The notes below the pieces were generated by a model. The model saw nothing but the letters and a program-made list of their open reading frames with translations. It was not told the origin of the DNA and made no database searches. Shown piece by piece: positions 8,058-20,622 of a stretch of DNA of 64,000 nt (positions are counted from its first letter, which is position 1; the number at the start of each line of letters is the position of its first letter). The stretch lies in sequence record ON190025.1. One strand, given 5' to 3'. The translations under genes and the position numbers were made by a program.

Positions 8058-8084
8058 AAAAAAGGGCGCTATTTGCGCCCTTTT
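8058..8084 (-). terminator. Rho-independent terminator
   Basis: GGGCGC/GCGCCC stem flanked by A6 and T4. Confidence 0.75.
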
Positions 8085-8593: not shown

Positions 8594-8606
8594 TTTCACC
8601 TCTTAC

Positions 8607-8642: not shown

Positions 8643-10079
8643 TTAAAAGCTGTAGCGTTCGACGCCTACAGTTTTCATCATGATCTTGACTGGCTCAAGC
8701 TCACCACTCAACAGTGAAGTCAAGATAGATGGGCTACAACCAGATACCAGTGCAGTGCCCGCTTCGCCAGCTTTAACCGGAACGTTGCCAAGACGACCAC
8801 GAATGTTCCAAAAGACCAGTTGTGGCATTTCATAACCAGCACGTGCGTACTTGGCTTTGATTGCATCGAAGTTCGCAGGTTCACCGCGACCGTACCATCC
8901 ACCACCAGTGTTTGCTTGATCGAATTCCATGTCACTCATGATAAGCAACTTGGTTGGCATATCTTCTTGTGAAAGATTTGCACGCTTCGCACGTTCTAAC
9001 AGAACATCAAAGCACTTACCGATGTTCGTGCTCATGTCTTCGCCTGAACGATTCATGTTATCAAGACGCTCTTTCAATGAAGAGCCGCGCAACTGGTGGA
9101 AGTGCGGGTCGCTTGAGAACGAAATGAACTGATCTTTGAAGATGCCTTCATTGCGTTCAGCAACATAAATCCCAAGAGACATTGCAACTTGCTTACAAGT
9201 CACACCTGAATGGTCTGTACCTGCGTTAATTGGCGTGCTCATAGAGCCAGACACGTCAACAACAGGGATGATGCGTTCATCAGAACCTTCCATGTAGTTT
9301 GGCAGAGCTTTCCATTGCTCGTTCGCTACAGACGCATTACCGTGACTAACGCTCTTAACGACATCGTATGGGAACAGTGCGCCAGCGTTGATCTTCGCTT
9401 CACCTTTTTGAAGTGACTCGATGTAGCTTGTGTAACGAGCTGAAGCGTTACGACCGAATGCTTGTTGATAACGAGCAGACGCTACAGAAGGCAACTTACC
9501 GAAGTCGATTGCATCCCATTTTTGCGCACACATCTTCTGCTCAACAGTGTCAGACAGAAGCGACAGAATCTTACGCCACTGCTTCGCAGTTACGCCAAGA
9601 GACTTGATTGTGCGCTTGAACACATGACCGTTTTTGCTGTTTTCACGTGGGAACCACTTCGCAGCAAGACCATTCTTGTCATTGACAATTGCGTTCGACC
9701 ACATTGTAATCGCATCTTTTTCAAGACGTGTACCGAAAGCAGAAATCAAGTCATCGTAACGACCTAGTTCTGGAATTTTCGACATTACAGCACGAGCTAC
9801 GTCAGGCTGTTCATTACAAAGTTTAGTGAATAGTGTACGGAAAGTACCACGTTCACCCGCACCACCTCGAACGTCACGAGACCACAAAAGAATGCGAGTC
9901 GCTAGTTCTGGGTTTTCTGCAAACGCACGACCGAACAGCGTTTTAGACTGATCGTTGCCACGCATAGCAGCAATACCGAAGAACAAGTTTAGACACTCGT
10001 TACCTGAAGTGCTGTGAGTAACTGCACCGTTTGCTGTGCGTGAATCGTTTGTTTGCATTGCGTTCATAAATACTGACAT
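8643..10079 (-). CDS. DUF2828-family protein (helical TROVE/Ro60-like N-terminal region plus C-terminal vWA)
   Basis: TANGAVTHSTSGNECLNLFF, RDVRGGAGER, LAAKWFPRE, KINAGALFPY; MIDAS DVSGSM, SDMEFD, VFWNIR. The TROVE relationship is inferred. Confidence 0.85.
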   Translation of the reverse strand: MSVFMNAMQTNDSRTANGAVTHSTSGNECLNLFFGIAAMRGNDQSKTLFGRAFAENPELATRILLWSRDVRGGAGERGTFRTLFTKLCNEQPDVARAVMSKIPELGRYDDLISAFGTRLEKDAITMWSNAIVNDKNGLAAKWFPRENSKNGHVFKRTIKSLGVTAKQWRKILSLLSDTVEQKMCAQKWDAIDFGKLPSVASARYQQAFGRNASARYTSYIESLQKGEAKINAGALFPYDVVKSVSHGNASVANEQWKALPNYMEGSDERIIPVVDVSGSMSTPINAGTDHSGVTCKQVAMSLGIYVAERNEGIFKDQFISFSSDPHFHQLRGSSLKERLDNMNRSGEDMSTNIGKCFDVLLERAKRANLSQEDMPTKLLIMSDMEFDQANTGGGWYGRGEPANFDAIKAKYARAGYEMPQLVFWNIRGRLGNVPVKAGEAGTALVSGCSPSILTSLLSGELEPVKIMMKTVGVERYSF

Positions 10080-10115
10080 TGTTCATTTCCTCATAATTAA
10101 TTGCTGTAAAATGTC
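10075..10115 (-). promoter_or_regulatory. 5' UTR copy of the helix-NN-NCWGCAA motif pairing over the DUF2828 start codon
   Basis: GACATT-TT-ACAGCAA-TTAATTATGAGGAAATGAAC-AATGTC; AATGTC contains the ATG and the GAGG SD is in the loop. Confidence 0.8.
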
Positions 10116-10127
10116 GTTGATGTGATG

Positions 10128-10156
10128 ATTATACACGGATTTTAACCCGTGTAAAC
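10128..10156 (-). promoter_or_regulatory. Sigma70-type early promoter of the DUF2828 gene, palindromic spacer
   Basis: GTTTAC-17 nt-TATAAT; TACACGG...CCGTGTA inverted repeat. Confidence 0.8.
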
Positions 10157-10168
10157 AATTATTTTCAA

Positions 10169-10489
10169 TTATTTGTAATTGTGATGGCGAGTGATATTCG
10201 TACCGTTTTTGAATATTTCAACTGCCACATAACCACCAGTTTCATAGCAAGTGCGTAAATTTCGGTAGCCGTACTCTTCAAAGAATGCACGGATGAAACT
10301 AGAACCTTTCTTATCACAATCGCTAATATGAATTGGTACTTTGATTTTAATCGGGAAAAAAGCCCCGTTTTCAACTGCATGAGTGAATTCTTTTTCACAT
10401 TCAGCATTATAGTGTTCGCTAAGAACTTTACGAGCTACCTGCTCCCGTTCATTAATTTGCTTTGAAAGTTCATCATGACTAAGCATCAT
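10169..10489 (-). CDS. Hypothetical protein, apparent paralogue of 10486-10821
   Basis: 106 aa; FPIxIxV...CD...GY/FxN pattern shared with neighbour. Confidence 0.7.
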   Translation of the reverse strand: MMLSHDELSKQINEREQVARKVLSEHYNAECEKEFTHAVENGAFFPIKIKVPIHISDCDKKGSSFIRAFFEEYGYRNLRTCYETGGYVAVEIFKNGTNITRHHNYK

Positions 10490-10821
10490 TGAAACCCCGC
10501 TTGTTTATTTTCTCGAATTGTCAATTTCACAAACGAATATGAGTAGTCTCTCATATCACGTGGGTCGCCAGAATAACGACCGAACTGTGCATCGAAATTG
10601 TGAAATCCCTCGCGTTTCATGACGCTTTTAATAAGAGTCATCATTTCATCACAACACTCGTTATGCTCAAGATTCACTTGAATTGTAATCGGGAACTGAA
10701 ATCCCGAAACACCACCGATCTTACGCTCAATTGATTTGCGCATTTCAACGACGAACTGCTCTTCGCGTTTCGAGCGATTCTGTTTGACTTGTTGAGTTAA
10801 AACATCGTATAGATTATTCAT
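10486..10821 (-). CDS. Hypothetical protein
   Basis: 111 aa, ATGA-type overlaps with neighbours. Confidence 0.75.
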   Translation of the reverse strand: MNNLYDVLTQQVKQNRSKREEQFVVEMRKSIERKIGGVSGFQFPITIQVNLEHNECCDEMMTLIKSVMKREGFHNFDAQFGRYSGDPRDMRDYSYSFVKLTIRENKQAGFQ

Positions 10822-11186
10822 AGATATTCCTTAATATCTTTTGAAAAGTGACGAATACATGAACTATCAAGACGTTTACGACCATCACCGTCAATATCAG
10901 GTAATGTGTACCCATCATTGAATGGCTGACCGCTTGATTTAGCGATTTCGTATGCATCACTTCGATTGAAATATTCACCGCAGTAATTGATGAAACCTTG
11001 ACCACGATCACCAAGCTCGTTACGATGCTCATATGTACAGCCAAGTTCTTTCAATAGCTTAAACACGCCTTGCATGTTTCGTCCGAAATGACAGCTATCT
11101 GCGACTACGATCTCTCGCTGCTCACCATTCGGCATAGTCACTCGAATCGCATTAGCAGCACAAGAAATTACATTTACGTGCGACAT
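10818..11186 (-). CDS. Conserved-type phage hypothetical protein
   Basis: 122 aa, QGFINYCGEYFNRSDAYEIA motif, coupled overlaps. Confidence 0.75.
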   Translation of the reverse strand: MSHVNVISCAANAIRVTMPNGEQREIVVADSCHFGRNMQGVFKLLKELGCTYEHRNELGDRGQGFINYCGEYFNRSDAYEIAKSSGQPFNDGYTLPDIDGDGRKRLDSSCIRHFSKDIKEYL

Positions 11187-11536
11187 GTATCGTACCTCAT
11201 AAAAATAGAACCAACACGTTTGTATTGATTAGAATACATTAACAGTTTTGTCATTTTGCTGTGAGCAACAGGGTTGCTTGTTACAAGAACGACAGTTCGT
11301 GGGTAATTGCGATGGTCGATGGCATGTGATAGAATATCATAACCCTCTCGACCGACAGCATCACCTAAATCATTGTCCATGAAAAGTGTAATGTCAGTAA
11401 GATTCGTATACTTGACGAATTTCATGCCGTCGTCGAATGTACGAATCACGCGCTTTTCATCGTCTAGAATATTCGGTTTGGTGAACTTATTAATGTCACG
11501 TAAGTCATCAATCATTACAAACATAGTATTTCTCAT
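11174..11536 (-). CDS. Cyclic-phosphate-processing receiver (cREC)-like domain protein
   Basis: IDDLR, MDNDLG, GYD and TSNPVA match the LDDxR/SLDHDLG/GYD/HSxNPxG pattern of this stand-alone receiver family. Confidence 0.65.
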   Translation of the reverse strand: MRNTMFVMIDDLRDINKFTKPNILDDEKRVIRTFDDGMKFVKYTNLTDITLFMDNDLGDAVGREGYDILSHAIDHRNYPRTVVLVTSNPVAHSKMTKLLMYSNQYKRVGSIFMRYDTCRT

Positions 11537-11586
11537 TAGTTATTAGTGCTAAATACATCATACAGGTTTAATGAGTGGAAGTCAAC

Positions 11587-11958
11587 ATGAACGACGAAAA
11601 AATTATTTCTTTCGAACAGTATCTAAATGAGGGATGGTTTGAAAGGCAATGGTCGCGATACAAAGCAGGTGCTGACTCGCGTAGTATTAAGAAACTGGCC
11701 AAGATGCATACAAAGCTACTGCATATTGAGCAAAAAGCCAAGCAAAACAAATATCGTTATGAAGCAGTTCGATACAATTACGAACACATCAAGATGAATG
11801 TTTTAGATGCTAAGAAGCTCATCAATAAGTTGAGATATAAGAAAGGTATTAGCGATGAGCTAATAATGGCAATGGATAAGTTAGATGTCGAGCTAGATCG
11901 TCTCAACGACTTTGCGGTTGAAGGTCTTCATCAGCTAATGATTCAACACAAGTTATAA
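11587..11958 (+). CDS. Late protein, possible capsid-internal protein
   Basis: CTAAATA upstream; N-terminus IISFEQYLNE/G resembles a T4 capsid-targeting sequence. Confidence 0.65.
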   Translation: MNDEKIISFEQYLNEGWFERQWSRYKAGADSRSIKKLAKMHTKLLHIEQKAKQNKYRYEAVRYNYEHIKMNVLDAKKLINKLRYKKGISDELIMAMDKLDVELDRLNDFAVEGLHQLMIQHKL

Positions 11959-11961
11959 AAT

Positions 11962-11986
11962 AAAAGCCCCATTTAGGGGCTTTTTT
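11962..11986. terminator. Bidirectional terminator between convergent genes
   Basis: AAAA-GCCCC-ATTTA-GGGGC-TTTTTT. Confidence 0.8.
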
Positions 11987-11987
11987 G

Positions 11988-12200
11988 TTAGTATGAATGG
12001 CGCAACTTTTTTTCGATCATTCGATCTACAATCGTGGAGTACATAAGATGTTCTTTGTAATATTTCTCATCAACTCGGTTACATTGAAAGTCTCGAAAAT
12101 CTTTGCGCAGACGTGCAATAAATTTATTCAGTGTTTTGCGCACTTTGCAAACTTCAGACAATTCCATGCTTTTTAGTGTTTCTTCAGAAAGTATTTCCAT
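11988..12200 (-). CDS. Hypothetical protein
   Basis: 70 aa, GAGG SD. Confidence 0.65.
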   Translation of the reverse strand: MEILSEETLKSMELSEVCKVRKTLNKFIARLRKDFRDFQCNRVDEKYYKEHLMYSTIVDRMIEKKLRHSY

Positions 12201-12229
12201 GATTGCTCACCTCTTAGTTAATAGAATAC

Positions 12230-12274
12230 GGGAGACACAGGAATCGAACCCATTGCCTTGACCACATATCTCCC
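12230..12274 (-). ncRNA. 45 nt tRNA-like minihelix (acceptor plus T arm only)
   Basis: GGGAGAT...ATGGG-TTCGATT-CCTGT-GTCTCCC; no anticodon arm, no CCA. Confidence 0.55.
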
Positions 12275-12298
12275 ACTGAGAAGTTACGCCAATTCAGA

Positions 12299-12532
12299 TT
12301 AATGCGCTATGCTTTGTAAACGGCGCATACGCTCACGCTGCGATAACTCATCGAGGCTTGGTTTCTTAACCTCTTCGTCTTTCTCTGCGTCTTCAGTTTC
12401 TGCTTCCTTTTTAATCTTTTCAGCATCGGGACCAATGTTCTTCCAAAGAGGTGCATTGCGCCAATTTTCATTATACCCATTGCCAGAACCACGCCCTTCA
12501 CGAGCATGAGACTTTTGATGAATGTTCTTCAT
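12299..12532 (-). CDS. Hypothetical protein
   Basis: 77 aa, start overlaps upstream stop. Confidence 0.65.
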   Translation of the reverse strand: MKNIHQKSHAREGRGSGNGYNENWRNAPLWKNIGPDAEKIKKEAETEDAEKDEEVKKPSLDELSQRERMRRLQSIAH

Positions 12533-12738
12533 TATTCGTTAGATTTCTTCGTTACTTGAGTTGCAAGACCTACCGCAGCAGCACCAGCGGCTACTTTGGC
12601 ACCTGCTTTCGCAGCTTTACCAGCTTTCTTTGCACCAGACTTGACACGATCTTTTACTGAACGTTTCTTTTTCTTATTATCTTCTGGCTTTTGTTCTTCT
12701 AGTTCCATCATGAACTTATCGAATGTTTTATCACTCAT
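12532..12738 (-). CDS. Small basic late protein, possible capsid-internal protein
   Basis: CTAAATA upstream on minus strand; KTFDKFMME(LEE) N-terminus; Lys/Ala-rich. Confidence 0.65.
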   Translation of the reverse strand: MSDKTFDKFMMELEEQKPEDNKKKKRSVKDRVKSGAKKAGKAAKAGAKVAAGAAAVGLATQVTKKSNE

Positions 12739-12828
12739 GAGATTTCTCCAATTGATTTGAGTTCATCTATATTTAGAATCACATCTAAATGTTTCTTTAG
12801 ACTATATCAATTATCAAACGCCATAAAC

Positions 12829-12853
12829 AAAAAAACCTGCTCAAGGCAGGTTT
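12829..12853 (-). terminator. Terminator ending the tRNA/ncRNA operon
   Basis: AAACCTGC-CTTGA-GCAGGTTT then T run. Confidence 0.85.
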
Positions 12854-12868
12854 AGATGTGCAATACAC

Positions 12869-13113
12869 AGACATTCGAGAAGTGTTTTATCGTCTTTCCT
12901 TAAATCTCATTTGACTATAACGATGTTTCTCATCGGAAAAATACTCATGTTTCGGCATGAGTCCTATTTCGTTTGACAGTACGAACACCGTCTTAATGGT
13001 CATTTCCTACCACGAGAATGCGACAGGCTCACGTCATCACTGAGAAAGCAGCTAGTGCGCCTCATTACTATTAAAGTTTGCTTTGATTTTGTAATGATTG
13101 CTGTACAATGTCT
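12869..13113 (-). ncRNA. ~245 nt structured RNA closed by the motif helix
   Basis: AGACATT-GT-ACAGCAA...AATGTCT; internal hairpins TCATTAC/GTAATGA, ACTCATG/CATGAGT, CGATG/CATCG, TTCGT/ACGAA; no ORF in the track. Confidence 0.75.
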
Positions 13114-13124
13114 TATTGCGAATT

Positions 13125-13213
13125 TGGCGGAAGCACTGGGAGTCGAACCCAGAGAACGCTATTAACGTCCGACACCTTAGCAGGGTGCTGTCATACCTTT
13201 AGACCATGCTTCC
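13125..13213 (-). tRNA. tRNA-Ser(GCT)
   Basis: Cloverleaf, long variable arm, CCA. Confidence 0.95.
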
Positions 13214-13252
13214 AACGTCTCATCAATTAATGGCATGCTGCTCTCATGCTCA

Positions 13253-13285
13253 GACACATATTTGCTCTTATTGCTGACGTGTGCC
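13253..13285 (-). ncRNA. Minimal hairpin copy of the motif
   Basis: GGCACA-CG-TCAGCAA-TAAGAGCAAATA-TGTGTC. Confidence 0.55.
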
Positions 13286-13368
13286 ACGCGCTTCGCAGAT
13301 CCACTTTAGATAATTTAAAGACCTAGCGGGACTCTTAGCAGGTCTATCCACTCTCTTTCGATTCGCGT
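13286..13368 (-). ncRNA. Structured spacer element
   Basis: ACGCG/CGCGT closing stem, AGACCT/AGGTCT hairpin, repeated AGTGGAT. Confidence 0.4.
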
Positions 13369-13381
13369 TGCTAAGTGAATT

Positions 13382-13458
13382 TGGTGCCCAACCCGAGATT
13401 CGAACTCGGAACTTCTAGTGTTTGAAACTAGTGCCTCTGCCAATTGGACTAGTTGGGC
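13382..13458 (-). tRNA. tRNA-Leu(CAA), short variable loop
   Basis: CTAGT-TTCAAAC-ACTAG anticodon arm, CCA. Confidence 0.92.
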
Positions 13459-13469
13459 TTGATTAAACT

Positions 13470-13570
13470 GCCGCGACTCTTTAATCCCTAACACCTGTCA
13501 GCTTTCGCTCGGCTGAGACCGTTTTTCAACGGCGGTAGTCTAGCTTCGTATAGAACGCGGCTTATGCTAG
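13470..13570 (-). ncRNA. ~100 nt pseudoknotted RNA of unknown class
   Basis: CTAGC/GCTAG stem crossed by GCCGCG/CGCGGC; two GAAA-loop hairpins. Confidence 0.6.
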
Positions 13571-13574
13571 AATT

Positions 13575-13651
13575 TGGTACGCACGGGCGGATTCGAACCG
13601 CCATCCCTGAGATTTTAAGCCTCATGCCTCTGCCAATTGGACCACGTGCGC
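13575..13651 (-). tRNA. tRNA-Leu(TAA), short variable loop
   Basis: TGAGG-CTTAAAA-TCTCA, CCA. Confidence 0.92.
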
Positions 13652-13653
13652 AT

Positions 13654-13727
13654 TGGAGCTCGAACAGGGAATCGAACCCTGACCTGCGGATTTGCAATCC
13701 GTTATACTGCCATTATACGATTCGAGC
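13654..13727 (-). tRNA. tRNA-Cys(GCA)
   Basis: Cloverleaf, U73, CCA. Confidence 0.95.
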
Positions 13728-13739
13728 ATAAATGTACTT

Positions 13740-13816
13740 TGGGGTGACAGACGGGGATCGAACCCGCATCTTCCGGAATCACAACCCGGGGGTATTTCCA
13801 CTTCACCCACTGCCAC
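13740..13816 (-). tRNA. tRNA-His(GTG), C73 but no encoded G-1
   Basis: CCGGG-TTGTGAT-TCCGG; base at -1 is T. Confidence 0.92.
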
Positions 13817-13942
13817 ACCAAAGTACACTTAAAAGTTTGCATTATGTCTTGGAGAAATAGATAAATCTACTAGCAACACCGCCGTCGCTACCTGCAATAC
13901 TTTGGGATGTTTACGACATCAAACGAATGCGCTTCCTGTGCA

Positions 13943-14182
13943 TTAATCAGTTTTCTTTAAGTAGATTCTATCAGGCGATAGTTCTCTTGTAAACATGTTT
14001 TTGAAATAAATTTCGATATCTGCTTCAGTCGTTGAAGACTCAATTTCAAGAGCACGCTCAAGAATCTTGTTACGCTTAAACCCAGCGCGCCAACAGTCAA
14101 ACATAAGTCTGTCCATTTTATTTAGCTTTTCGATTTGATTTGAGTTTACGTATTCATGAGTTTCAAGTAATACAGGCGTCAT
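13943..14182 (-). CDS. Hypothetical protein
   Basis: 79 aa ORF between tRNAs. Confidence 0.6.
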   Translation of the reverse strand: MTPVLLETHEYVNSNQIEKLNKMDRLMFDCWRAGFKRNKILERALEIESSTTEADIEIYFKNMFTRELSPDRIYLKKTD

Positions 14183-14205
14183 AATTTATTTCTCATCATA
14201 AAGAA

Positions 14206-14279
14206 TGGTAGTCCCTAGTGGAATCGAGCCACTTCTTTCTCTGTGTAAAAGAGACGTACTTCCATTATACTAAGGGACC
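14206..14279 (-). tRNA. tRNA-Val(TAC)
   Basis: Cloverleaf, T-loop CTCGATT, CCA. Confidence 0.92.
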
Positions 14280-14285
14280 AAAATT

Positions 14286-14359
14286 TGGAGCGGGTACACG
14301 GACTCGAACCGAGACGAACGACTTGGAAGGACGTCATGCTACCATTACATCATACCCGC
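14286..14359 (-). tRNA. tRNA-Gly(TCC)
   Basis: Cloverleaf, U73, CCA. Confidence 0.93.
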
Positions 14360-14370
14360 ATTGTTAATCT

Positions 14371-14526
14371 GAAGCGTCGAACAAATCACGTATTGCACGT
14401 AGATTCGTAAGCTCTACAGTAAGTGTTCTTATAAAGAACGGGTTGGTCTCATTCGCGAGACATTTTTCAACATATCGAATTTTATCGCGTATGTTGCCCT
14501 TGCTTAGTGTAAAGTAGTCATGCTTC
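14371..14526 (-). ncRNA. Candidate multi-hairpin RNA in tRNA spacer
   Basis: GAAGC/GCTTC closing stem with four hairpins (CAACATA/TATGTTG, GTCTC/GAGAC, GTTCT/AGAAC, GTAGA/TCTAC). Confidence 0.4.
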
Positions 14527-14548
14527 GTAACCTCTTTGTTTTTGAATT

Positions 14549-14624
14549 TGGAGGTGACACCGATACTCGAAATCGGATCTTACGCCGTATGAAAGCGTTG
14601 CTCTGCCACTTGAGCTACATCACC
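14549..14624 (-). tRNA. tRNA with CAT anticodon (Met-like), atypical U73
   Basis: ACGCT-TTCATAC-GGCGT, CCA. Confidence 0.85.
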
Positions 14625-14857
14625 AATTGCAGTAATTAACTCATTTAATCGCACACTGGCTGACACCATATATTCATGGTCTGAGTGAGGAACCACATAG
14701 TGGGTACTGTTACCTCTGCTTAGTTTTGATTGTTTTACATGACGATGACTAGAAACGTTCATAATAATGCCACGCGATACATCCTATATCGCTGCTAACA
14801 TCTAAGTTAGCGTATCCTGCCTTTCGGCTACAGTGTCGTTTCCGACGAATTAAGTAC

Positions 14858-15085
14858 AGACAATACCGAAGTGTTTTTTCGTCTTTTGCATAAATCGGAG
14901 TTGACTAGCTTATTGATTCTCAACAAGCAAATATCGTCTGTTTCAGCGACGCGCCTATCTGACTATTTCTAGACAGAGAGAATCTTTCCTTTCAAGCTGC
15001 GCCTAAGCAAGCTCAGGTTAAAATCAGCCCAGGTTAAGATCATCACTTCTTTTAAGTAATTTCAATTGTTTGCTGTATATTGTCT
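14858..15085 (-). ncRNA. ~228 nt structured RNA closed by the motif helix, paralogous to 12869-13113
   Basis: AGACAAT-AT-ACAGCAA...ATTGTCT; shares AAGACGAWAAAACACTTC (17/18) and AGTGATGA with the 12869 RNA. Confidence 0.75.
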
Positions 15086-15148
15086 CCCTCACCATGCTCG
15101 TGATATGCCGAAGCAAAGTATCATTCGTCGCATGATAAGAGCTTAATA

Positions 15149-15224
15149 TGGCACGCCGTATGAGATTCGAACTCATAACCCCATCCTTAGAAGGGACGTG
15201 CTCTTCCAATTGAGCTAACAGCGC
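15149..15224 (-). tRNA. tRNA-Arg(TCT)
   Basis: CGTCC-CTTCTAA-GGATG, CCA. Confidence 0.93.
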
Positions 15225-15298
15225 ATTGAAAAGATTCGAACCATGAACTAGTGTAGACGATGGTAGTAAAGAGAGTCTACGCTCATGTGTTCGAAATT

Positions 15299-15373
15299 TG
15301 GTGGACACGCAGGGAGTCGAACCCTATCTTCCTCATTGCAAGTGAGGCGCTTTCCCAATTAAGCTAACGGCCC
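15299..15373 (-). tRNA. tRNA-Ala(TGC), irregular acceptor stem
   Basis: G3.U70 present; inner acceptor pairs mismatched or bulged. Confidence 0.85.
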
Positions 15374-15380
15374 ATATTTT

Positions 15381-15590
15381 TTACAACTGTGTGATTGAAA
15401 TATATTCCCAACCGTATAAACCTTCAAGTTCTTCAATCGGCTCACTAACAATGTCAGAAATATATTCAGCAACTTTTGCTTCAACTTCTTCATTAGATAA
15501 TTCTTCACTAACGGAAAAAACATCTTCGTTATTGTTGCCACCGAAATCCCCACCAATGTCATATTCACACCATACAGAAATATAGTTCAT
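15381..15590 (-). CDS. Small acidic hypothetical protein
   Basis: MNYISVWCEYDIGG..., 69 aa. Confidence 0.65.
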   Translation of the reverse strand: MNYISVWCEYDIGGDFGGNNNEDVFSVSEELSNEEVEAKVAEYISDIVSEPIEELEGLYGWEYISITQL

Positions 15591-15614
15591 GTTATTCTCG
15601 CAGTTGTTTGAAAA

Positions 15615-15690
15615 TGGTGCCCTGACACGGATTCGAACCGCGAACCTGCTCATTACAAGTGAGCTGCACTGCCAGTTGTGCTATCAGGGC
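15615..15690 (-). tRNA. tRNA-Thr(TGT)
   Basis: Cloverleaf, CCA. Confidence 0.95.
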
Positions 15691-15696
15691 GTTACT

Positions 15697-15808
15697 GAGT
15701 GTTATTACTAGCGTCGTCCAGACCAGTGATACCAACACTGAAAGGGAATCGAACCCTAAACATTTCTTTCCGATAAGAATATTAGTAAATTGTTTGCTGA
15801 AAACACTC
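15697..15808 (-). ncRNA. YrlA-like circularly permuted tRNA mimic (candidate phage Y RNA)
   Basis: GAGTGT-TT-TCAGCAA...AGGG-TTCGATT-CCCT (T arm), CAGTG-TTGGTAT-CACTG (closed acceptor), GTC-TGGAC-GAC (D arm)...ACACTC. Confidence 0.75.
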
Positions 15809-15817
15809 TTCGGTATT

Positions 15818-15891
15818 TGGCTGGGGATAACAGATTCGAACTGATACCAACGCATTCAAAGTACGTTATGCTGCCTTTACACCAATCCCCA
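15818..15891 (-). tRNA. tRNA-Gln(TTG)
   Basis: U1-A72, G73, CCA. Confidence 0.95.
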
Positions 15892-15910
15892 ATTGTTCTT
15901 AAATTATCTT

Positions 15911-15986
15911 TGGCGGAACCGACGGGTTTCGAACCCGCTACCTTCTCCGTGACAGGGAGACATGCAACCACTTACACCTCGGCTCC
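15911..15986 (-). tRNA. tRNA-Asp(GTC)
   Basis: Cloverleaf, CCA. Confidence 0.95.
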
Positions 15987-16054
15987 CCAAAGACAACTTA
16001 AAGTAGTTGCTTTGTTTTTCAAGTTCACACTTAACGGTAGTGACTCTCCGAATT

Positions 16055-16130
16055 TGGCGCTTCATGTTGGACTCGAACCAACGACTCTCTGATTAACAGT
16101 CAGACACTCTACCAACTGAGTTAATGAAGC
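16055..16130 (-). tRNA. tRNA-Asn(GTT) copy 1
   Basis: Cloverleaf, CCA. Confidence 0.95.
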
Positions 16131-16131
16131 A

Positions 16132-16206
16132 TGGCGGGCGTGGAGAATTTCGAAATCTCGACTTGTCGGTTAACAGCCGACTACTCTGCCTCTGAGTTAC
16201 ACACCC
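16132..16206 (-). tRNA. tRNA-Asn(GTT) copy 2
   Basis: Cloverleaf, divergent body, CCA. Confidence 0.92.
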
Positions 16207-16218
16207 TTGAATTTAAAC

Positions 16219-16276
16219 AGTAATCCTTTTTGCTTTTTCCAAATAAAAGTTTTGTATTGTTTGCTGTAAGATTACT
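16219..16276 (-). ncRNA. 58 nt RNA consisting mainly of the motif
   Basis: AGTAATC-TT-ACAGCAA...GCAAAAAG-GATTACT. Confidence 0.7.
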
Positions 16277-16281
16277 TAAAC

Positions 16282-16355
16282 TGGCAGGGGCATAGAGATT
16301 CGAACTCTAACGAACGGGTTTGGAATCCGTCATGCTGCCTTTACATCATGCCCCT
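16282..16355 (-). tRNA. tRNA-Trp(CCA)
   Basis: Cloverleaf, CCA. Confidence 0.95.
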
Positions 16356-16361
16356 AAAATC

Positions 16362-16435
16362 TGGTAGTCCCTAAGAGAATCGAACTCTTACCAAGCGATT
16401 ATCGGTCGCACGCTCTACCGTTGAGCTAAGGGACT
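16362..16435 (-). tRNA. tRNA-Ile(GAT), C at position 33
   Basis: GCGA-CCGATAA-TCGC, CCA. Confidence 0.88.
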
Positions 16436-16499
16436 AAAGTGAGCACATTTCAGTGCTCGTGTTAATCGGTTAAGTGACTAAACTTCCCGGTTAACTAAT

Positions 16500-16598
16500 T
16501 GGCGGAAGACTAGGGATTCGAACCCTAACATCACCTCCCGGTGACCGACGGTTTTCAAGACCGTTGCCGCTACCCAGAATCTCTCGGCTAAGCCTTCC
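16500..16598 (-). tRNA. tRNA-Ser(TGA), enlarged D loop
   Basis: ACGGT-CTTGAAA-ACCGT, long variable arm, CCA. Confidence 0.92.
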
Positions 16599-16604
16599 AA
16601 TTAA

Positions 16605-16847
16605 TTATTTGTGTCTACCCCACATCAGCTTATCAAACTGACTAAGATATTCTTCAACTGCATCAGCATTCGCTTGACTGACAACCCAAACATTATCTTG
16701 TGATTTTGATTTGGTGTCTCTAACAGCGCCAAGTTTTTGCATCATGTTTCGATGTCTCTCTCTATCCATTGCACCACTAAAAAGTGAGCCAGAAACTCCG
16801 AAAGTAACATCTTTCGACTCGGTAATGAATTCATCAAATGTTTTCAT
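16605..16847 (-). CDS. Putative internal head protein (IP-like)
   Basis: MKTFDEFITE/S matches the T4 IP capsid-targeting sequence pattern; AAGGA SD; CTAAATA upstream. Confidence 0.75.
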   Translation of the reverse strand: MKTFDEFITESKDVTFGVSGSLFSGAMDRERHRNMMQKLGAVRDTKSKSQDNVWVVSQANADAVEEYLSQFDKLMWGRHK

Positions 16848-16893
16848 TGTAATTTTCCTTATTGCGTAAAACAATATTTAGTCGAAATAAATT

Positions 16894-16970
16894 TGGTTGC
16901 GTGGGGCTGGATTCGAACCAGCGTTCTCCGGCTTATGAGACCGACGAGATGACCACTTCTCTACCCCGCA
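16894..16970 (-). tRNA. Initiator-like tRNA-fMet(CAT) with a bulged acceptor stem
   Basis: Body resembles the bacterial initiator (TGCGGGG...CTCGTCGG.CTCATAA...CGCAACCA); one extra A in the 3' acceptor strand. Confidence 0.85.
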
Positions 16971-16980
16971 ATTATTCAAC

Positions 16981-17067
16981 AGCTTGCGTTCTTTGGTCTG
17001 TTTATCGCTGTCTGAACTGAGTTCGCCGAGCGATCAATAGATTAAGTTAAATTGCAGTATGCAAGCT
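16981..17067 (-). ncRNA. 87 nt motif-closed RNA
   Basis: AGCTTGC-AT-ACTGCAA...ATCGCT/AGCGAT hairpin...AAAGAAC-GCAAGCT. Confidence 0.7.
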
Positions 17068-17072
17068 AAAAC

Positions 17073-17158
17073 TGGTGGAGCGTAGAGGAATCGAACCTCT
17101 CTACCCGTTAAGGGTCAGGGATTTACAGTCCCCTGTCTCACCTTGAGACGTACGCTCC
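17073..17158 (-). tRNA. tRNA-Tyr(GTA)
   Basis: Long variable arm, CCA. Confidence 0.95.
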
Positions 17159-17164
17159 GTAATT

Positions 17165-17239
17165 TGGTTCTCCCGACGAGATTCGAACTCGCGCACTTCA
17201 CCTTGAAAGGGTGATGACCTACCGTTAGTCCACGGGAGA
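17165..17239 (-). tRNA. tRNA-Glu(TTC)
   Basis: TCACC-CTTTCAA-GGTGA, CCA. Confidence 0.93.
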
Positions 17240-17302
17240 ATTAAATTGTATATTGATTTGCAAGCTATCTAACTTACAAAGCGATACACAATGTATCTAA
17301 TT

Positions 17303-17379
17303 TGGTACGCCGCCCTGGACTCGAACCAGACACCTGAGAGTTAAAAGCTCCCTGCTCTTCCATGATGAGCTACCGACGC
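17303..17379 (-). tRNA. tRNA-Lys(TTT) copy 1
   Basis: Cloverleaf, CCA. Confidence 0.95.
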
Positions 17380-17390
17380 ATTATAAAATA

Positions 17391-17465
17391 TGGTGGGTCG
17401 CAAGAGATTCGAACTCTCACCGGTCTGGTTAAAAGCCAGATGTACTACCGTTATACGAACGACCC
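17391..17465 (-). tRNA. tRNA-Lys(TTT) copy 2
   Basis: Cloverleaf, divergent body, CCA. Confidence 0.93.
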
Positions 17466-17554
17466 AGATTTGATTTTCACGTTAAGAGCGTTTGCTAAAT
17501 AACTCAAAACTAAAACCCCTTGCTTGATTTAACTCTTACAAACAAGCTATAATA

Positions 17555-17629
17555 TGGTGCACCCCCTCGGAATCGAACCGAGCACTGCGGGACTTCAATC
17601 CGCCGCTTTTCCTGATAAGCTAAGGGTGC
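17555..17629 (-). tRNA. tRNA-Phe(GAA)
   Basis: GCGGA-TTGAAGT-CCCGC, CCA. Confidence 0.9.
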
Positions 17630-17630
17630 A

Positions 17631-17708
17631 TGGTACGCAAGAAGAGATTCGAACTCTTAACTTCTGGTTTCTAAGACCAGTGCCTCTGCCAGATTGGGCT
17701 ACTTGCGC
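17631..17708 (-). tRNA. tRNA-Leu(TAG), short variable loop
   Basis: CTGGT-CTTAGAA-ACCAG, CCA. Confidence 0.92.
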
Positions 17709-17726
17709 ATTAAATTTTGTAAACTT

Positions 17727-17857
17727 CTTTTCTTCATTGTACATGATGTTTATATCGTTGTAAACATCTTTTTTTGAAAAACTTTTCATTCGTTTTTGAA
17801 TGATGTTTCGCTTTTCTTCATTGTACATGATGTTTATATCGTTGTAAACATCTTTTT
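17727..17857 (-). promoter_or_regulatory. Exact 47 bp direct repeat (17727-17773, 17811-17857), each a sigma70-type promoter
   Basis: TTTACA-17 nt-TACAAT in each copy, with inverted repeat GATGTTTA...TAAACATC over the -35. Confidence 0.8.
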
Positions 17858-18063
17858 GAATTTATTTTGAAGAACTTAACGTTTTCATTTTCTATGTGTT
17901 AATATTAACACTCGCTCAAGACATCATAAACACTAATTTATGAAAAAGTTCGTTAAATTCTATCATCTCGACAGTACTTAACGAGATACGGTCCTAAGCG
18001 TATCAATTCGTAGAAGCAGTTTCGGGAATGTGCGAAAGCGAGCTTCAATCAAACAACACTAAC

Positions 18064-18139
18064 TGGCACCCAATACAAGATTCGAACTTGTAACCTTCGC
18101 CTTCGTAGGGCGCTGCTCTTCCAATTGAGCTAATCGGGC
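18064..18139 (-). tRNA. tRNA-Arg(ACG)
   Basis: Cloverleaf, CCA. Confidence 0.95.
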
Positions 18140-18147
18140 ATTAAAAC

Positions 18148-18224
18148 TGGTCCGTGACAAGCGATTCGAACGCTTAACTTCTCCGCCCCAAACGGAGTAC
18201 TCTACCAGATTGAGCTAGTCACGG
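18148..18224 (-). tRNA. tRNA-Pro(TGG) copy 1
   Basis: Cloverleaf, CCA. Confidence 0.93.
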
Positions 18225-18233
18225 ATTTTAAAT

Positions 18234-18307
18234 TGGTCGGGACGAAGAGACTCGAACTCTTACCACATGCTCCCAAAGCATGAACGCTACCTTTACGCCA
18301 CGTCCCG
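18234..18307 (-). tRNA. tRNA-Pro(TGG) copy 2
   Basis: Cloverleaf, divergent body, CCA. Confidence 0.93.
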
Positions 18308-18327
18308 TTTGTTCTTTAACTTTGTTT

Positions 18328-18357
18328 ATCATACTCTGTAATCAAAGTACGTTAAAC
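18328..18357 (-). promoter_or_regulatory. Probable sigma70-type promoter for the downstream tRNAs
   Basis: TTTAAC-17 nt-TATGAT just downstream of a terminator. Confidence 0.5.
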
Positions 18358-18384
18358 AAAATTTCTTAACTTTCTTACGCCCAT

Positions 18385-18408
18385 AAAAAAGGACGCTATT
18401 TGCGTCCT
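18385..18408 (-). terminator. Rho-independent terminator
   Basis: GGACGC/GCGTCC stem plus T6. Confidence 0.8.
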
Positions 18409-18437
18409 CAAGTATACTTCTATGTTATACTATCGGA

Positions 18438-18551
18438 CTACAAGAGGGTATCCCACTTCTGGTTCGCAATCGGATTCGCTAGATACACGAATTCTGAGCG
18501 CAGAAAATCGCTGCGTAATGTCTCAGATGAATGTGTAAACGAATGCGTCAT
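18438..18551 (-). CDS. Possible 37 aa peptide
   Basis: MTHSFTHSSETLRSDFLRSEFVYLANPIANQKWDTLL, GAGAG upstream, terminator downstream. Confidence 0.35.
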   Translation of the reverse strand: MTHSFTHSSETLRSDFLRSEFVYLANPIANQKWDTLL

Positions 18552-18678
18552 TGAATGCTCTCTTGAAATAAAAATTAAAATTTGTTTTGTTTCTTTATAG
18601 TACTTATAACACTAAATCTGACGATTTGCGGTATTTTCGCAGAAAATTGAAAAAAATTATCAATTTTCTGCGATTTTA

Positions 18679-18915
18679 TTAACCTAAGTGTTTTCGCTTG
18701 TTCATTTCAGCAAGAATTTCGTCGTTGTAGTGCTTATTAAGCTCAACGAATTTCTTGTGCTGATCTGAAGTCAATTCGTTTGTATCGTTCAGATGCTTCA
18801 AAAACCCAAGAGGCTTACGAAACGACTTGCGATATTCATTCAGACGCTCATCTGTTAGATTGCGCAATTGTTTCGGAGTCAGTAACGTTTTGTTGATATT
18901 AAATGTTCCGCTCAT
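18679..18915 (-). CDS. Hypothetical protein
   Basis: MSGTFNINK..., 78 aa, GAGG SD. Confidence 0.65.
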   Translation of the reverse strand: MSGTFNINKTLLTPKQLRNLTDERLNEYRKSFRKPLGFLKHLNDTNELTSDQHKKFVELNKHYNDEILAEMNKRKHLG

Positions 18916-18941
18916 GTTATACCTCACTAGTTTATCAAAAA

Positions 18942-19057
18942 TGGTAGTCGGGGCTGGATTCGAACCAGCGACCACGTGCTTAACAGGCAATTGAAGGAGT
19001 GCTGGAGCGATACTTGTCAGTATCATTCTTCGTGCTCTACCACTGAGCTACCCGACT
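18942..19057 (-). ncRNA. tRNA-shaped RNA, anticodon loop replaced by a motif-bearing insert (CCA present)
   Basis: AGTCGGG/CCCGACT-A-CCA, normal D and T arms; insert GATACT-GACA-AGTATC-GCT-CCAGCAC. Confidence 0.75.
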
Positions 19058-19093
19058 ATGAATTATTTAACTTTGAATTTCAAATTTCGATAT

Positions 19094-19354
19094 TCAAAGT
19101 TTCGTTTGTCTTTTTTTACTGTAATACGTATCCCAATCAATAGAAACAGGACAGTTCTTACTACCCACACGAGATAAGAAAACGTCGTGAGTGTCTTTGT
19201 AAGCTTCTCTGAGAGACTTTACTTGTTTCTCATGATGAGTTATGTACTCAGCACACGCTTTGTTGTACTCAGCTTTAGAGAAGCGTTCATCGCCCGTGAA
19301 ATTACCGTTTAGATACGGTCGAATAACACGAACACGTTCTTTAGACCATCCCAT
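19094..19354 (-). CDS. Hypothetical protein
   Basis: 86 aa ORF. Confidence 0.65.
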   Translation of the reverse strand: MGWSKERVRVIRPYLNGNFTGDERFSKAEYNKACAEYITHHEKQVKSLREAYKDTHDVFLSRVGSKNCPVSIDWDTYYSKKRQTKL

Positions 19355-19378
19355 ACTAAAACTATTTTCAATTTATTT

Positions 19379-19456
19379 TGGTGACCCCAACAGGACTCGA
19401 ACCTGTAACCTACCGATTATGAGTCGGTTGCTCTAACCAAGTTGAGCTATAGGGCC
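19379..19456 (-). tRNA. tRNA(CAT), most like Ile2 (lysidine type)
   Basis: GGCCC acceptor and GACTCATAATC arm resemble bacterial tRNA-Ile2. Confidence 0.85.
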
Positions 19457-19457
19457 A

Positions 19458-19826
19458 TTATTTCTCTAGAAATCGACCTACTTTAGCAGCGAAGATGTTT
19501 GCTTCTTCTGTAATACGAGCAGTCGATTTAATTTGATGAAATGCGTCTTGTTGATGCAGCAAATCGAGCTTATCTGCACATTTCATCAATTCTTTTATAG
19601 TTTGCATAATCTCAATATTATCAAACTGACTTGTATCAGGGTGATAATTTAGATTGTCTAATATCGGCAGAACTTGTTGATAGCAACCCATGCCAATGAA
19701 GTTTATCATAAGTCTATACTGCATTTCAACAGCAAATGTACAATATTTTCGAAGATTGCGCTTTACAATCTCACAACGATGCAATATACAATCAAGTTCG
19801 TCATTTATGTCATTAAACTTATTCAT
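19458..19826 (-). CDS. Hypothetical protein
   Basis: MNKFNDINDEL..., 122 aa. Confidence 0.65.
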   Translation of the reverse strand: MNKFNDINDELDCILHRCEIVKRNLRKYCTFAVEMQYRLMINFIGMGCYQQVLPILDNLNYHPDTSQFDNIEIMQTIKELMKCADKLDLLHQQDAFHQIKSTARITEEANIFAAKVGRFLEK

Positions 19827-19840
19827 AAACCCTCGAAAAT

Positions 19841-19965
19841 TGGTGGAGAGTACGGGATTTGAACCACGTGACAAAAAGATTTACCTAGTTATTAAGGTTT
19901 GCAGCATGAATGCTTGTCAGTATTCTTTAACATTCTTTTGCTCTACCAGACTGAGCTAACTCTCC
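19841..19965 (-). ncRNA. tRNA-shaped RNA with motif-bearing insert (CCA present)
   Basis: GGAGAGT/ACTCTCC-A-CCA; AAAAGA/TCTTTT stem encloses GAATACT-GACA-AGCATTC-AT-GCTGCAA. Confidence 0.75.
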
Positions 19966-19975
19966 GGAATTTGAA

Positions 19976-20088
19976 GGTGAAGTGCAGGACTCGAACCTGC
20001 GACCTCCGGCGTGCATGTGAATGCAGAATGAAATCTTATCAGACTTCGTTTTTTGGCCGGCGTTCTAACCTACTGAACTAACTTCACC
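19976..20088 (-). ncRNA. tRNA-shaped RNA with motif-bearing insert (no CCA)
   Basis: GGTGAAGT/ACTTCACC; insert AAAAAAC-GAAGTCT-GATA-AGATTTC-AT-TCTGCAT. Confidence 0.75.
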
Positions 20089-20103
20089 AATGTAAAAACA
20101 TAT

Positions 20104-20227
20104 TGAGCAGGGTGCAGGATTCGAACCTGCGTCACGATCTTGGAAATGATATGCTAAATTGATTGCAGAATACAAACTTAACAGCTTGCGTTTATGCTAC
20201 GTGTGCTAGCCACTACACCAACCCTGC
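20104..20227 (-). ncRNA. tRNA-shaped RNA with motif-bearing insert (no CCA; acceptor extends to 17 bp)
   Basis: GCAGGGT/ACCCTGC; insert ATAAAC-GCAAGCT-GTTA-AGTTTGT-AT-TCTGCAA. Confidence 0.75.
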
Positions 20228-20301
20228 TCAATATGTTCTTGAGAGTGCTTGTGATTAACCACAAGCACCAAAAATCCTCTAGTTTATTTTGCCTTAGCTA
20301 A

Positions 20302-20481
20302 TCAACACAACCTGAAATCGTGCGCTTTATTTACGGGATGAATGACCCGTTCGCATATGATTAGCGCAAAAGTATGAATGCGCACCTTTTCTTCTTCAAT
20401 GTCCAAGGCAAAGAGGACGATGAATACTAGTGCGAGAAGATATACAATCAAATTGTTCACCTCGCTTGATAAGTGAGAGTA
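20302..20481 (-). CDS. Possible small membrane protein
   Basis: Hydrophobic LIVYLLALVFIVLFAL stretch after a GAGG SD; start uncertain. Confidence 0.4.
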   Translation of the reverse strand, partial: YSHLSSEVNNLIVYLLALVFIVLFALDIEEEKVRIHTFALIICERVIHPVNKAHDFRLC

Positions 20482-20484
20482 CAT

Positions 20485-20607
20485 TGGTCGAGTGTAACGG
20501 AATCGAACCGTTCCCACGATCTCCCTATGATATGCGTAAATTGGTTGCTGAATATAATCATGTCTGATTACAGTATGCTACGTGTGCTGCCACTACACCA
20601 ACACTCG
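20485..20607 (-). ncRNA. tRNA-shaped RNA with motif-bearing insert (CCA; acceptor extends to 21 bp); paralogue of 20104
   Basis: CGAGTGT/ACACTCG-A-CCA; insert GTAATC-AGACAT-GATTAT-AT-TCAGCAA. Confidence 0.75.
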
Positions 20608-20622
20608 ACCAATATACTCTCG

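Follow-up and report, generated by a model that had tools for sequence, protein, structure and literature searches.

What does a DUF2828 protein do in a phage that encodes, on the same DNA strand, a series of small RNA elements sharing one motif? The question is raised by sequence record ON190025.1, from which a stretch of 64,000 nucleotides (hereafter the window) was analysed. Vibrio phage PVA23, which belongs to the KVP40-like Straboviridae, has a sequence 100% identical to the region concerned (positions 8,643 to 20,607). A previous sequence-only reading had described here a DUF2828 gene with twelve RNA elements and had proposed a system resembling Ro60 and its Y RNAs, a proposal that the genomic evidence presented below supports. 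Of the conditions named in that reading as able to refute it, all that could be checked on genomic data turned out in its favour. We consider it probable that the protein, which combines DUF2828 and DUF7788, is a divergent ring of the Ro60 type whose cognate RNAs form a panel marked by a stem followed by C-N-G-C-A-A (hereafter the module). Binding of these RNAs by the protein and their role in infection are what we infer from the likeness to Ro60.

A Recurrent Module on the Minus Strand

The 28 tRNA genes called by ARAGORN with default settings (13125-19456) are all encoded by the minus strand, as are the module elements, which are either free-standing (E1 to E7) or part of tRNA-shaped RNAs (T1 to T5; Table 1). 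Six of the free-standing elements (E1, E2 and E4 to E7) are built alike. A strand of 6-7 nt is followed by 3 nt (mostly N-T-A), by CAGCAA or CTGCAA, by an A-rich tract and by the exact complement of the first strand. In E2, E4, E6 and E7 the 3′ strand is followed by G-T, making C-T-G-T. The structured motif with an exact 6-nt helix occurs six times on the minus strand of the segment 10000-17100 and zero times on its plus strand, while 1000 dinucleotide shuffles of the segment gave a mean of 0.35 and a maximum of 3. The recurrence noticed in the sequence-only reading thus stands far above a shuffled background, and the A-rich stretch that it placed before the 3′ strand is present in all six elements. 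The bare hexamer CWGCAA shows no enrichment in the window, with 55 copies on the plus strand and 54 on the minus strand, so that the enrichment is one of the structured motif only.

A covariance model (R1) of 42 seed sequences, nearly all from distant phages but with E6 among them, was run over both strands of the whole window. Its six best matches are, in this order, E6 (46.5 bits), E7 (21.8 bits), E1 (19.9 bits), E5 (18.9 bits, 5′ part), E2 and E4, all of them elements named in the sequence-only reading. Of the twelve proposed copies, E3, T1 and T3 are degenerate. The exact complement claimed for every copy is found in E1, E2 and E4 to E7, but E3 has one G.U pair. There is one compensatory change in E3 of phage nt-1, its CAGCAA is CTGCAA, TGGCAA or CTGCAT in related phages, and it was not recovered by the R1 scan of the window. 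We regard E3 as a doubtful member because its core is lost in relatives, although its hairpin is conserved. E2 and E4 are conserved in related phages. E5 contains a T-arm-like hairpin (GGGTTCGATTCCC) and a second hairpin, both with compensatory changes among relatives. E6 is composed of a 7-bp stem, CTTACAGCAA, the A-rich tract and a 3′ CTGT, and shows one compensatory pair change in phage PVA8. The ends of E7 are kept in relatives and its interior is variable.

A reading of the elements as promoters or terminators was considered and rejected: the helix strands vary and yet remain complementary, a U-tract is lacking, and the motif is absent from the plus strand of the segment. Known RNA families were also sought. 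At gathering thresholds only the tRNA families of Rfam match in the window, giving, beyond the ARAGORN calls, three long tRNA-like matches (112-122 nt) and one pseudo-tRNA. Relaxed thresholds add for the window elements just sub-threshold matches to the Dictyostelium Class I RNAs and to YrlA (see below).

Covariation of the Module and its Linkage to DUF2828 Genes

The module was followed in a distant set of 79 IMG/VR loci with DUF2828 homologues at 46-54% identity. The structured motif is found there 123 times on the strand of the gene and 23 times on the opposite strand, seven permuted control cores giving counts of 5-16. Its position is as biased as its strand. The first 500-nt bin past the stop codon of the DUF2828 gene holds 92 hits, as against 1-13 in any other bin. 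Of 75 loci, 54 have an element that begins in this bin, usually 20-100 nt past the stop codon. An element can directly follow the stop codon even where no tRNA is nearby (e.g., L004, L007, L013, L034). R1 gives 76 matches at E < 0.01, without exception on the gene strand; its seed sequences are bound to be among them. A set of 22 independent loci from genomes or metagenome-assembled genomes of bacteria and archaea has 15 matches, of which 14 are on the gene strand and most lie up to 400 nt upstream of the gene. The tie between motif and DUF2828 suspected from a single genome is very strong across genomes.

In an alignment of 42 short elements (A2), T11, C13, G15, C16, A17 and A18 are invariant. 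The 7-bp helix has 97.6% of its cells paired and 96 double-change cells, compared to 30 in shuffles, and a G-C pair is found in 41 of the 42 sequences. Since a 6-nt complement was required for an element to be chosen, part of the paired percentage follows from the selection, but the variety of pair types does not.

A survey of 50,697 cultured-phage records identified 710 genomes coding for a DUF2828 homologue, and the family, when clustered at 90% identity, falls into at least 7,496 clusters. The carriers include FelixO1-like coliphages, Salmonella, Listeria P100-like, Staphylococcus, Campylobacter, Enterococcus, Bacillus and Aeromonas phages as well as cluster E mycobacteriophages, whose homologues are already annotated as “Ro-like RNA binding protein”. 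Mycobacteriophage Snenia has three module-closed RNAs past the gene, the middle one with a tRNA mimic of YrlA type (39.3 bits). Three tandem module RNAs lie immediately 5′ of the gene in Listeria phage LMTA-57, and four are found among the tRNAs downstream of the gene in Escherichia coli phage EC6. The proteins of these three phages each combine PF11443 and PF25043. The module is thereby recorded in FelixO1-like phages, in Listeria P100-like phages and in mycobacteriophages of cluster E.

The DUF2828/DUF7788 Protein is Predicted to Form a Ro60-Like Ring

The 478-amino-acid protein matches PF11443 (DUF2828; 2.7e-29) and PF25043 (DUF7788; 1.6e-46) of Pfam; a search of NCBIfam gave no match. PHROG 850 labels the DUF2828 family “RNA-binding protein”. 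The residues of the MIDAS (D275-x-S277-x-S279, T351 and D383) are invariant across an alignment of 28 sequences (A1). An AlphaFold (AF2) model computed from 28 aligned sequences has a pLDDT of 76.5 and a pTM of 0.72, while the model from the single sequence is uninformative (pLDDT 38). The best four matches of the former in a Foldseek search of the PDB are all Ro60 (E 1.4e-6 to 1.6e-5, 508-568 columns, TM 0.47-0.56), either of Thermus phage phiLo (E 1.4e-6) or of Xenopus (E 1.3e-5). Only Ro60 structures match the model at full length. The others (E > 0.03) have about half the alignment length of Ro60 or less and nearly all are vWA/MIDAS domains. The TROVE-like fold anticipated for the protein is thus the one predicted by the model. 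An independent result points the same way: Rsr is the top HHpred match of CKA15_055, the homologue of a Listeria phage (PMC12282133).

DUF2828 proteins have been reported from plants and from mimivirus-like sequences, and no function was found described for DUF2828 in the literature searched. Purified virions contain CKA15_055 (20 peptides, 57% coverage) though it is encoded outside the structural module (PMC12282133), and this homologue of phage CKA15 may be packaged in the viral particle.

Architectures of the Module RNAs

The module is found in RNAs of four architectures. Minimal RNAs have about 45-66 nt. In RNAs of 115-140 nt the module closes a YrlA-like domain composed of a T-arm, a closed acceptor-like hairpin and a D-arm. 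RNAs of 210-275 nt, which adjoin DUF2828 genes in many loci, have a partly conserved interior; E2 and E4 probably belong to this class. The last architecture is that of the tRNA-shaped T1 to T5. The YrlA arm order and terminal stem are present in two L029 RNAs (11911-12035 and 12393-12531, with YrlA scores of 38.0 and 34.8 bits) and in L208 (4543-4680), and L040 scores 24.7 bits; the layout is partial in E5 and permuted in T1 to T5. The tRNA mimicry invoked in the sequence-only reading is accordingly seen in module RNAs of other phages, which match YrlA below threshold through these three parts.

The acceptor, D and T arms of T1 to T5 are normal, but the anticodon arm is replaced by a local hairpin, 3-4 nt and the core. 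No cloverleaf with a 7-nt anticodon loop was found in any of them. All are left uncalled by ARAGORN with default settings. When introns are allowed four of the five are called, two of them with an intron at the canonical 37/38 site. T1 is then an Ile tRNA with a 22-nt intron and a long extra arm, T3 a Val(AAC) tRNA with a non-canonical loop, and T2 is still uncalled. In relatives both strands of the hairpin of T4 have changed with full covariation (CAAGC/GTTTG becoming GATTC/GAATC), and the core reads CGGCAA. The T5 module is invariant in five relatives, whose sole difference from the window is one compensatory T-arm pair, and its motif region scores 9.7 bits with R1. A tRNA match in the same cluster (15302-15373, minus strand; Rfam 44.9 bits) has no ARAGORN call, and its orthologue in phage phi-ST2 is the pseudo “tRNA-OTHER”.

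Opening a YrlA-like RNA at its acceptor hairpin and closing its 5′/3′ stem with a loop yields the order acceptor, D-arm, hairpin, 3 nt, core, T-arm, acceptor. As this is the order of arms in T1 to T5, these RNAs are circular permutations of the YrlA layout. The sequence-only reading was right to see the module in them, but its term “inverted” is better replaced by circular permutation. The segment 19940-20004 (minus strand), running from the T-arm and acceptor end of T2 through the acceptor start and D-arm of T3, has a sub-threshold YrlA match of 32 bits. Read across the tandem T2 and T3, the arms come in the permuted order of YrlA, a hint at a route by which such RNAs could arise.

The Copy in the Leader of the DUF2828 Gene

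The sequence-only reading had located one copy in the gene's own leader. This is E1: the start codon ATG of the DUF2828 gene falls within its 3′ strand (AATGTC), and the Shine-Dalgarno sequence GAGG within its loop. E1 is conserved in five KVP40-like phages with a variable loop. At the distant loci L040, L053, L055 and L075 a hairpin stands just 5′ of the Shine-Dalgarno sequence, with complementary helices that differ between loci. Since E1 pairs the start codon, free DUF2828 protein bound to it would repress its own translation; such autoregulation might match the level of the protein to that of its partner RNA. Upstream of the DUF2828 start of L036 and L065 (~100 nt), tRNA-like sequence (T-arm- or D-arm-like) is continuous with the leader.

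Table 1. Genes and RNA elements in the region of the DUF2828 gene.
Feature	Position	Strand	Description
RNase H-like (PF04308/DUF458) gene	8069..8599	-	Directly downstream of DUF2828 gene; Pfam 4.1e-17
DUF2828 + DUF7788 gene	8643..10079	-	478 aa; predicted Ro60-like HEAT-repeat ring and vWA domain, intact MIDAS
E1	10075..10115	-	GACATT / TTA / CAGCAA ... AATGTC; DUF2828 leader copy; candidate translational operator
cREC_REC (cyclic-phosphate processing receiver) protein	11174..11536	-	120 aa; PF20274, 1.8e-14; between DUF2828 gene and tRNA cluster
E2	12869..13113	-	245 nt; AGACATT / GTA / CAGCAA ... AATGTCT, exact 7-bp closing helix, 3′ CTGT; E4 paralogue
E3	13253..13285	-	33-nt hairpin, CAGCAA-like core; doubtful member
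E4	14858..15085	-	228 nt; AGACAAT / ATA / CAGCAA ... ATTGTCT; E2 paralogue
E5	15697..15808	-	112 nt; GAGTGT / TTT / CAGCAA ... ACACTC; partial YrlA-like layout
E6	16219..16276	-	58 nt; AGTAATC / TTA / CAGCAA ... GATTACT; minimal RNA, clearest Class I-like copy
E7	16981..17067	-	87 nt; AGCTTGC / ATA / CTGCAA ... GCAAGCT
T1	18942..19060	-	Rfam tRNA 49.8 bits, ~40-nt insert; degenerate core CAGCAC, 4-nt spacer
T2	19841..19968	-	Rfam tRNA 50.1 bits; hairpin, ATG, CTGCAA at anticodon-arm position
T3	19976..20090	-	Rfam tRNA 56.3 bits; hairpin, ATT, degenerate core CTGCAT; fold z = -3.7
T4	20104..20230	-	tRNA-shaped; hairpin, ATT, CTGCAA
T5	20485..20610	-	tRNA-shaped; 8-bp hairpin, ATT, CAGCAA; T4 paralogue
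Acb1 (anti-CBASS 2H phosphoesterase) homologue	21273-21728	-	151 aa; Pfam E 8.1e-46; just past RNA cluster

Gene Neighbourhood

The constant pair in the loci studied is the DUF2828 gene and its module RNAs; the other neighbours vary. The PF04308 gene is also a neighbour at L085 and was found by tblastn in 1 of the 79 distant loci. The cREC_REC gene hints at a setting of RNA-end processing, and T4-type RNA ligase 1, metallophosphatase and RtcB genes occur elsewhere near homologues. A conserved RNA-repair neighbourhood was nevertheless rejected: Rnl1, RtcB, metallophosphatase, PF04308, cREC and Band_7 are each found in at most 5 of the 79 loci by tblastn.

Some other stable RNAs are encoded in the same regions or their equivalents. 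LMTA-57 has a match to the ROOL RNA (L209 2470-3021; 88.5 bits; gathering score 99.1) some 1 kb 5′ of its DUF2828 gene. Judged by synteny, this is probably the counterpart of the 492-nt “non-coding” region reported as the most strongly transcribed one of CKA15. Clusters of tRNAs and small RNAs that bear DUF2828 also include tmRNA genes (L029 8605-9054, 75 bits; L046 15748-16165, 88 bits). The stable RNAs rnaC and rnaD of T4 (L211 4909-5172), which occupy the equivalent position after the tRNAs, were considered as relatives of the module RNAs and were discarded, as neither has the module. The best R1 match in the T4 tRNA region scores 10.6 bits (E about 1), and no module element was found in it.

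Proposed Mechanism and Alternative Explanations

In the arrangement that we favour, the protein would be a toroid of HEAT repeats that is closed by a vWA/MIDAS domain. The module cognate to it would consist of a helix of 6-8 bp with a conserved G at the beginning of the 5′ strand, of 3 nt and of the single-stranded C-N-G-C-A-A, with an A-rich tract before and U-G after the 3′ strand. RNAs bearing the module would be processed out of the tRNA cluster. They would form a panel of minimal RNAs of ~40-90 nt (E1, E6 and E7), of E5 with its tRNA arms, of the ~230-245 nt RNAs E2 and E4, and of T1 to T5, in which the module closed as a hairpin would take the place of the anticodon arm. If the particles resemble those of Ro60 and Y RNAs, the module would be the part that anchors each RNA to the ring, while the other part (tRNA mimic or long domain) may gate the ring or tether it to enzymes that handle tRNA or degrade RNA during infection.

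Several observations weigh against this proposal. Pfam TROVE (PF05731) has no match to the 478-amino-acid protein at E ≤ 0.1, and the ring is a predicted model with a TM of about 0.5. In a profile search of the sequences in the PDB, the match to phage Ro60 has an E value no better than 1.3 and lies in the MIDAS region; the approach to Ro60 by sequence searches (phmmer, hmmsearch against PDB) was given up, its other matches being spurious ones to designed armadillo repeats. On the RNA side, the YrlA (RF02553) gathering score of 69 bits is never reached, the best values being 39.3 (Snenia), 38.0 and 34.8 (L029) and 32 (window). The motif G-N-C-G-A-A of bacterial Y RNAs (PMC4201824) is not present, the conserved segment being C-N-G-C-A-A. 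Likewise, no phage copy reaches the gathering score of Class I RNAs (RF01414, 41.5) and most are not reported at E ≤ 1. A single 15-mer scanned over IMG/VR gave 79 hits, mostly due to chance, with ~8 true-looking elements; they fall in short partial loci and only two have a DUF2828 gene in the locus. In the 79 distant loci RNA-repair genes are just occasional neighbours of DUF2828. Finally, the E1 hairpin alone is weak (-2.7 kcal/mol, z = 0) and shows no covariation within the KVP40 group. Its weakness is as expected, because an operator would need the protein.

Four other explanations were weighed. Recognition of the module might fall to a different factor (e.g., an RNase of host or phage, the PF04308 protein, an enzyme of tRNA processing), with DUF2828 close by only because both belong to tRNA or small-RNA regions. 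Most copies in the window do lie among tRNAs, 3-10 kb off the DUF2828 gene, their 7-bp closing helices resemble acceptor stems, excision from a polycistronic precursor is required, and PF04308 adjoins the DUF2828 gene in the window as well as in L085. We find this explanation unlikely, as the element follows the DUF2828 stop directly in many loci without a nearby tRNA, every tested neighbour is rare in the distant set (see above), and the tRNA cluster of T4 has no module element. A slightly smaller chance is given to the elements being cis-acting parts of the DUF2828 mRNA (3′ stabilisers, processing sites or attenuators) rather than free RNAs. Their location on the same strand, usually starting 20-100 nt past the stop codon or in the leader, would be well explained in this manner, but not the copies scattered between tRNAs up to 10 kb away nor the tRNA-mimic domains of some elements. 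None of them has a U-tract, and the Dictyostelium RNAs with a like signature are abundant independent transcripts (PMC7919456).

T1 to T5 could also be true tRNAs with short introns, the hairpin and CWGCAA being an excision signal and the free-standing elements related processing substrates. GenBank orthologues are annotated as intron-containing tRNAs, the ARAGORN calls with introns agree with this in part, and RNA ligase genes are found near some DUF2828 homologues. This reading is ranked low, marginally below the preceding one, because neither the intron sites (30/31, 33/34 and 37/38) nor the identities (SeC, Trp, Val and Ile as against Ile, Asn and Cys in GenBank) are consistent, and the predicted identities repeat those of existing phage tRNAs; furthermore, the anticodon loops are non-canonical, and RNAs without a tRNA body carry the module too. 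Chance recurrence of a short A/T-rich motif beside random inverted repeats, finally, would fit the unenriched bare hexamer and the degenerate E3, T1 and T3. It is refuted by the shuffles, the strand bias, the permuted-core controls, the covariation and the model search, and is the least credible explanation by far. A Ro60-type ring with cognate module RNAs thus stays the preferred reading.

Relation to the Class I RNAs of Dictyostelium

E6 matches the Rfam family Dicty_Class_I_RNA (RF01414) over the full model with 31.8 bits, and the element at L029 11844-11900 with 30.8 bits. As described by Kjellin et al. (PMC7919456), Class I RNAs have 42-65 nt and a short stem that joins their ends. Their 5′ G is invariant and pairs with the C of the CUGU at the 3′ end, and a motif of 11 nt lies by the 5′ strand, its positions 3, 6, 9, 10 and 11 being near-invariant. 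The curated Dictyostelium discoideum form reads GTTGAC, CTTA, CAGCAA ... GTCAAC, TG (PMC7919456, supplement 19). The short class of phage RNAs shows all the defining features (length, stem, 5′ G, tail and 11-nt motif). It has 45-66 nt, CTG follows the stem in most copies, and the full 11-nt motif is found in several phage loci, with CTTACAGCAA in E6. The exact run CUUACAGCAA is common to E6 and to the Class I signature (stem, CUUACAGCAA, 3′ CUG). In both groups it stands right after the 5′ strand, the first G pairs with the C of the 3′ C-U-G(-U), the 3′ strand has an A-rich tract before it and the interior varies. The two differ in the spacer between helix and core, which is one nucleotide shorter in the phage RNAs, in the sub-threshold Rfam scores and in their genomic setting, phage copies being in tRNA clusters or flanking the gene and not transcribed from DUSE promoters in a dictyostelid genome. 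The only directly demonstrated binder of a Dictyostelium Class I RNA is the RRM protein Rnp1A. D. discoideum DdR-65, -66 and -67 are Class I RNAs of 86-140 nt with the same ends and motif (PMC7919456, supplement 19); Dictyostelium therefore has long forms too, like the phages.

Class I RNAs have been stated to occur nowhere outside Dictyostelia (PMC7919456), and no link between them and phages was found in the literature searched. It is conceivable, although we lean somewhat against it, that stem-CAGCAA-CUG is the universal ligand of PF11443/PF25043 proteins and that Class I RNAs are the eukaryotic members of the same ribonucleoprotein family. If true, a second Ro/Y-like lineage would span viruses (phages of Proteobacteria, Firmicutes and Actinobacteria) and eukaryotes. 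This gives a checkable hypothesis for the binding partner of RNAs that were thought to be restricted to social amoebae.

Novelty and Significance

Phage Ro-like proteins with YrlA RNAs are already known in mycobacteriophages, phage YrlA RNAs were reported in 2014 (PMC4201824), and the Ro60 of Thermus phage phiLo is a known phage Ro60 (PMC12135203). The same idea was proposed in 2025 for a DUF2828 homologue of a Listeria phage (PMC12282133). Within the literature searched we found no description of such a system in T4-like phages, in agreement with the sequence-only reading, nor of the CAGCAA module as the signature of a family, of its several RNA architectures or of its near-identity to the Class I signature. 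The proposal provides a testable partner and recognition element for a very large phage family of “unknown function” that includes tractable FelixO1-like coliphages and the Listeria P100 group. It would also account for many stretches of phage tRNA clusters that are left without annotation or called “intron-containing tRNA”, and would carry the Ro60/Y principle (a ring with a modular tethering RNA and tRNA mimicry) over to a second lineage of proteins whose RNA code is different.

Comparison with Known Systems

T4-type phages use translational operators, with autoregulation by RegA, gp32 and gp43. E1 is similar in that an RNA element covers the ribosome-binding region of the gene for its proposed binder; it differs in that it would be a copy of a module also found on trans-acting RNAs. 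Phage tRNAs and tRNA-like genes annotated with introns resemble T1 to T5, of which T1 to T3 are above the Rfam tRNA threshold and several encode CCA, but in T1 to T5 a module-bearing insert of 40-50 nt sits where the 7-nt anticodon loop is expected.

The closest parallel is with Ro60/Rsr and the Y RNAs. In both systems a protein with a ring and a vWA/MIDAS domain (predicted in the present case) has partner RNAs encoded beside its gene, their 5′ and 3′ ends are paired, and a conserved sequence flanks the 5′ strand. As in YrlA, a second RNA domain can be a tRNA mimic made of T-arm, closed acceptor-like hairpin and D-arm, and RNA ligase genes are occasionally near the DUF2828 gene, as they are near Rsr. 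The differences are as clear. The DUF2828 protein is of the PF11443 and PF25043 type and outside Pfam TROVE, and its RNAs have C-N-G-C-A-A three nucleotides past the helix in place of G-N-C-G-A-A. Many module RNAs have no tRNA mimic, some are circularly permuted into the shape of a tRNA, and up to a dozen module copies are found per genome, one of them in the leader of the gene. The comparison supports a system that would be akin to the Ro60-Y RNA particle while standing, by sequence membership, outside TROVE, YrlA and Class I.

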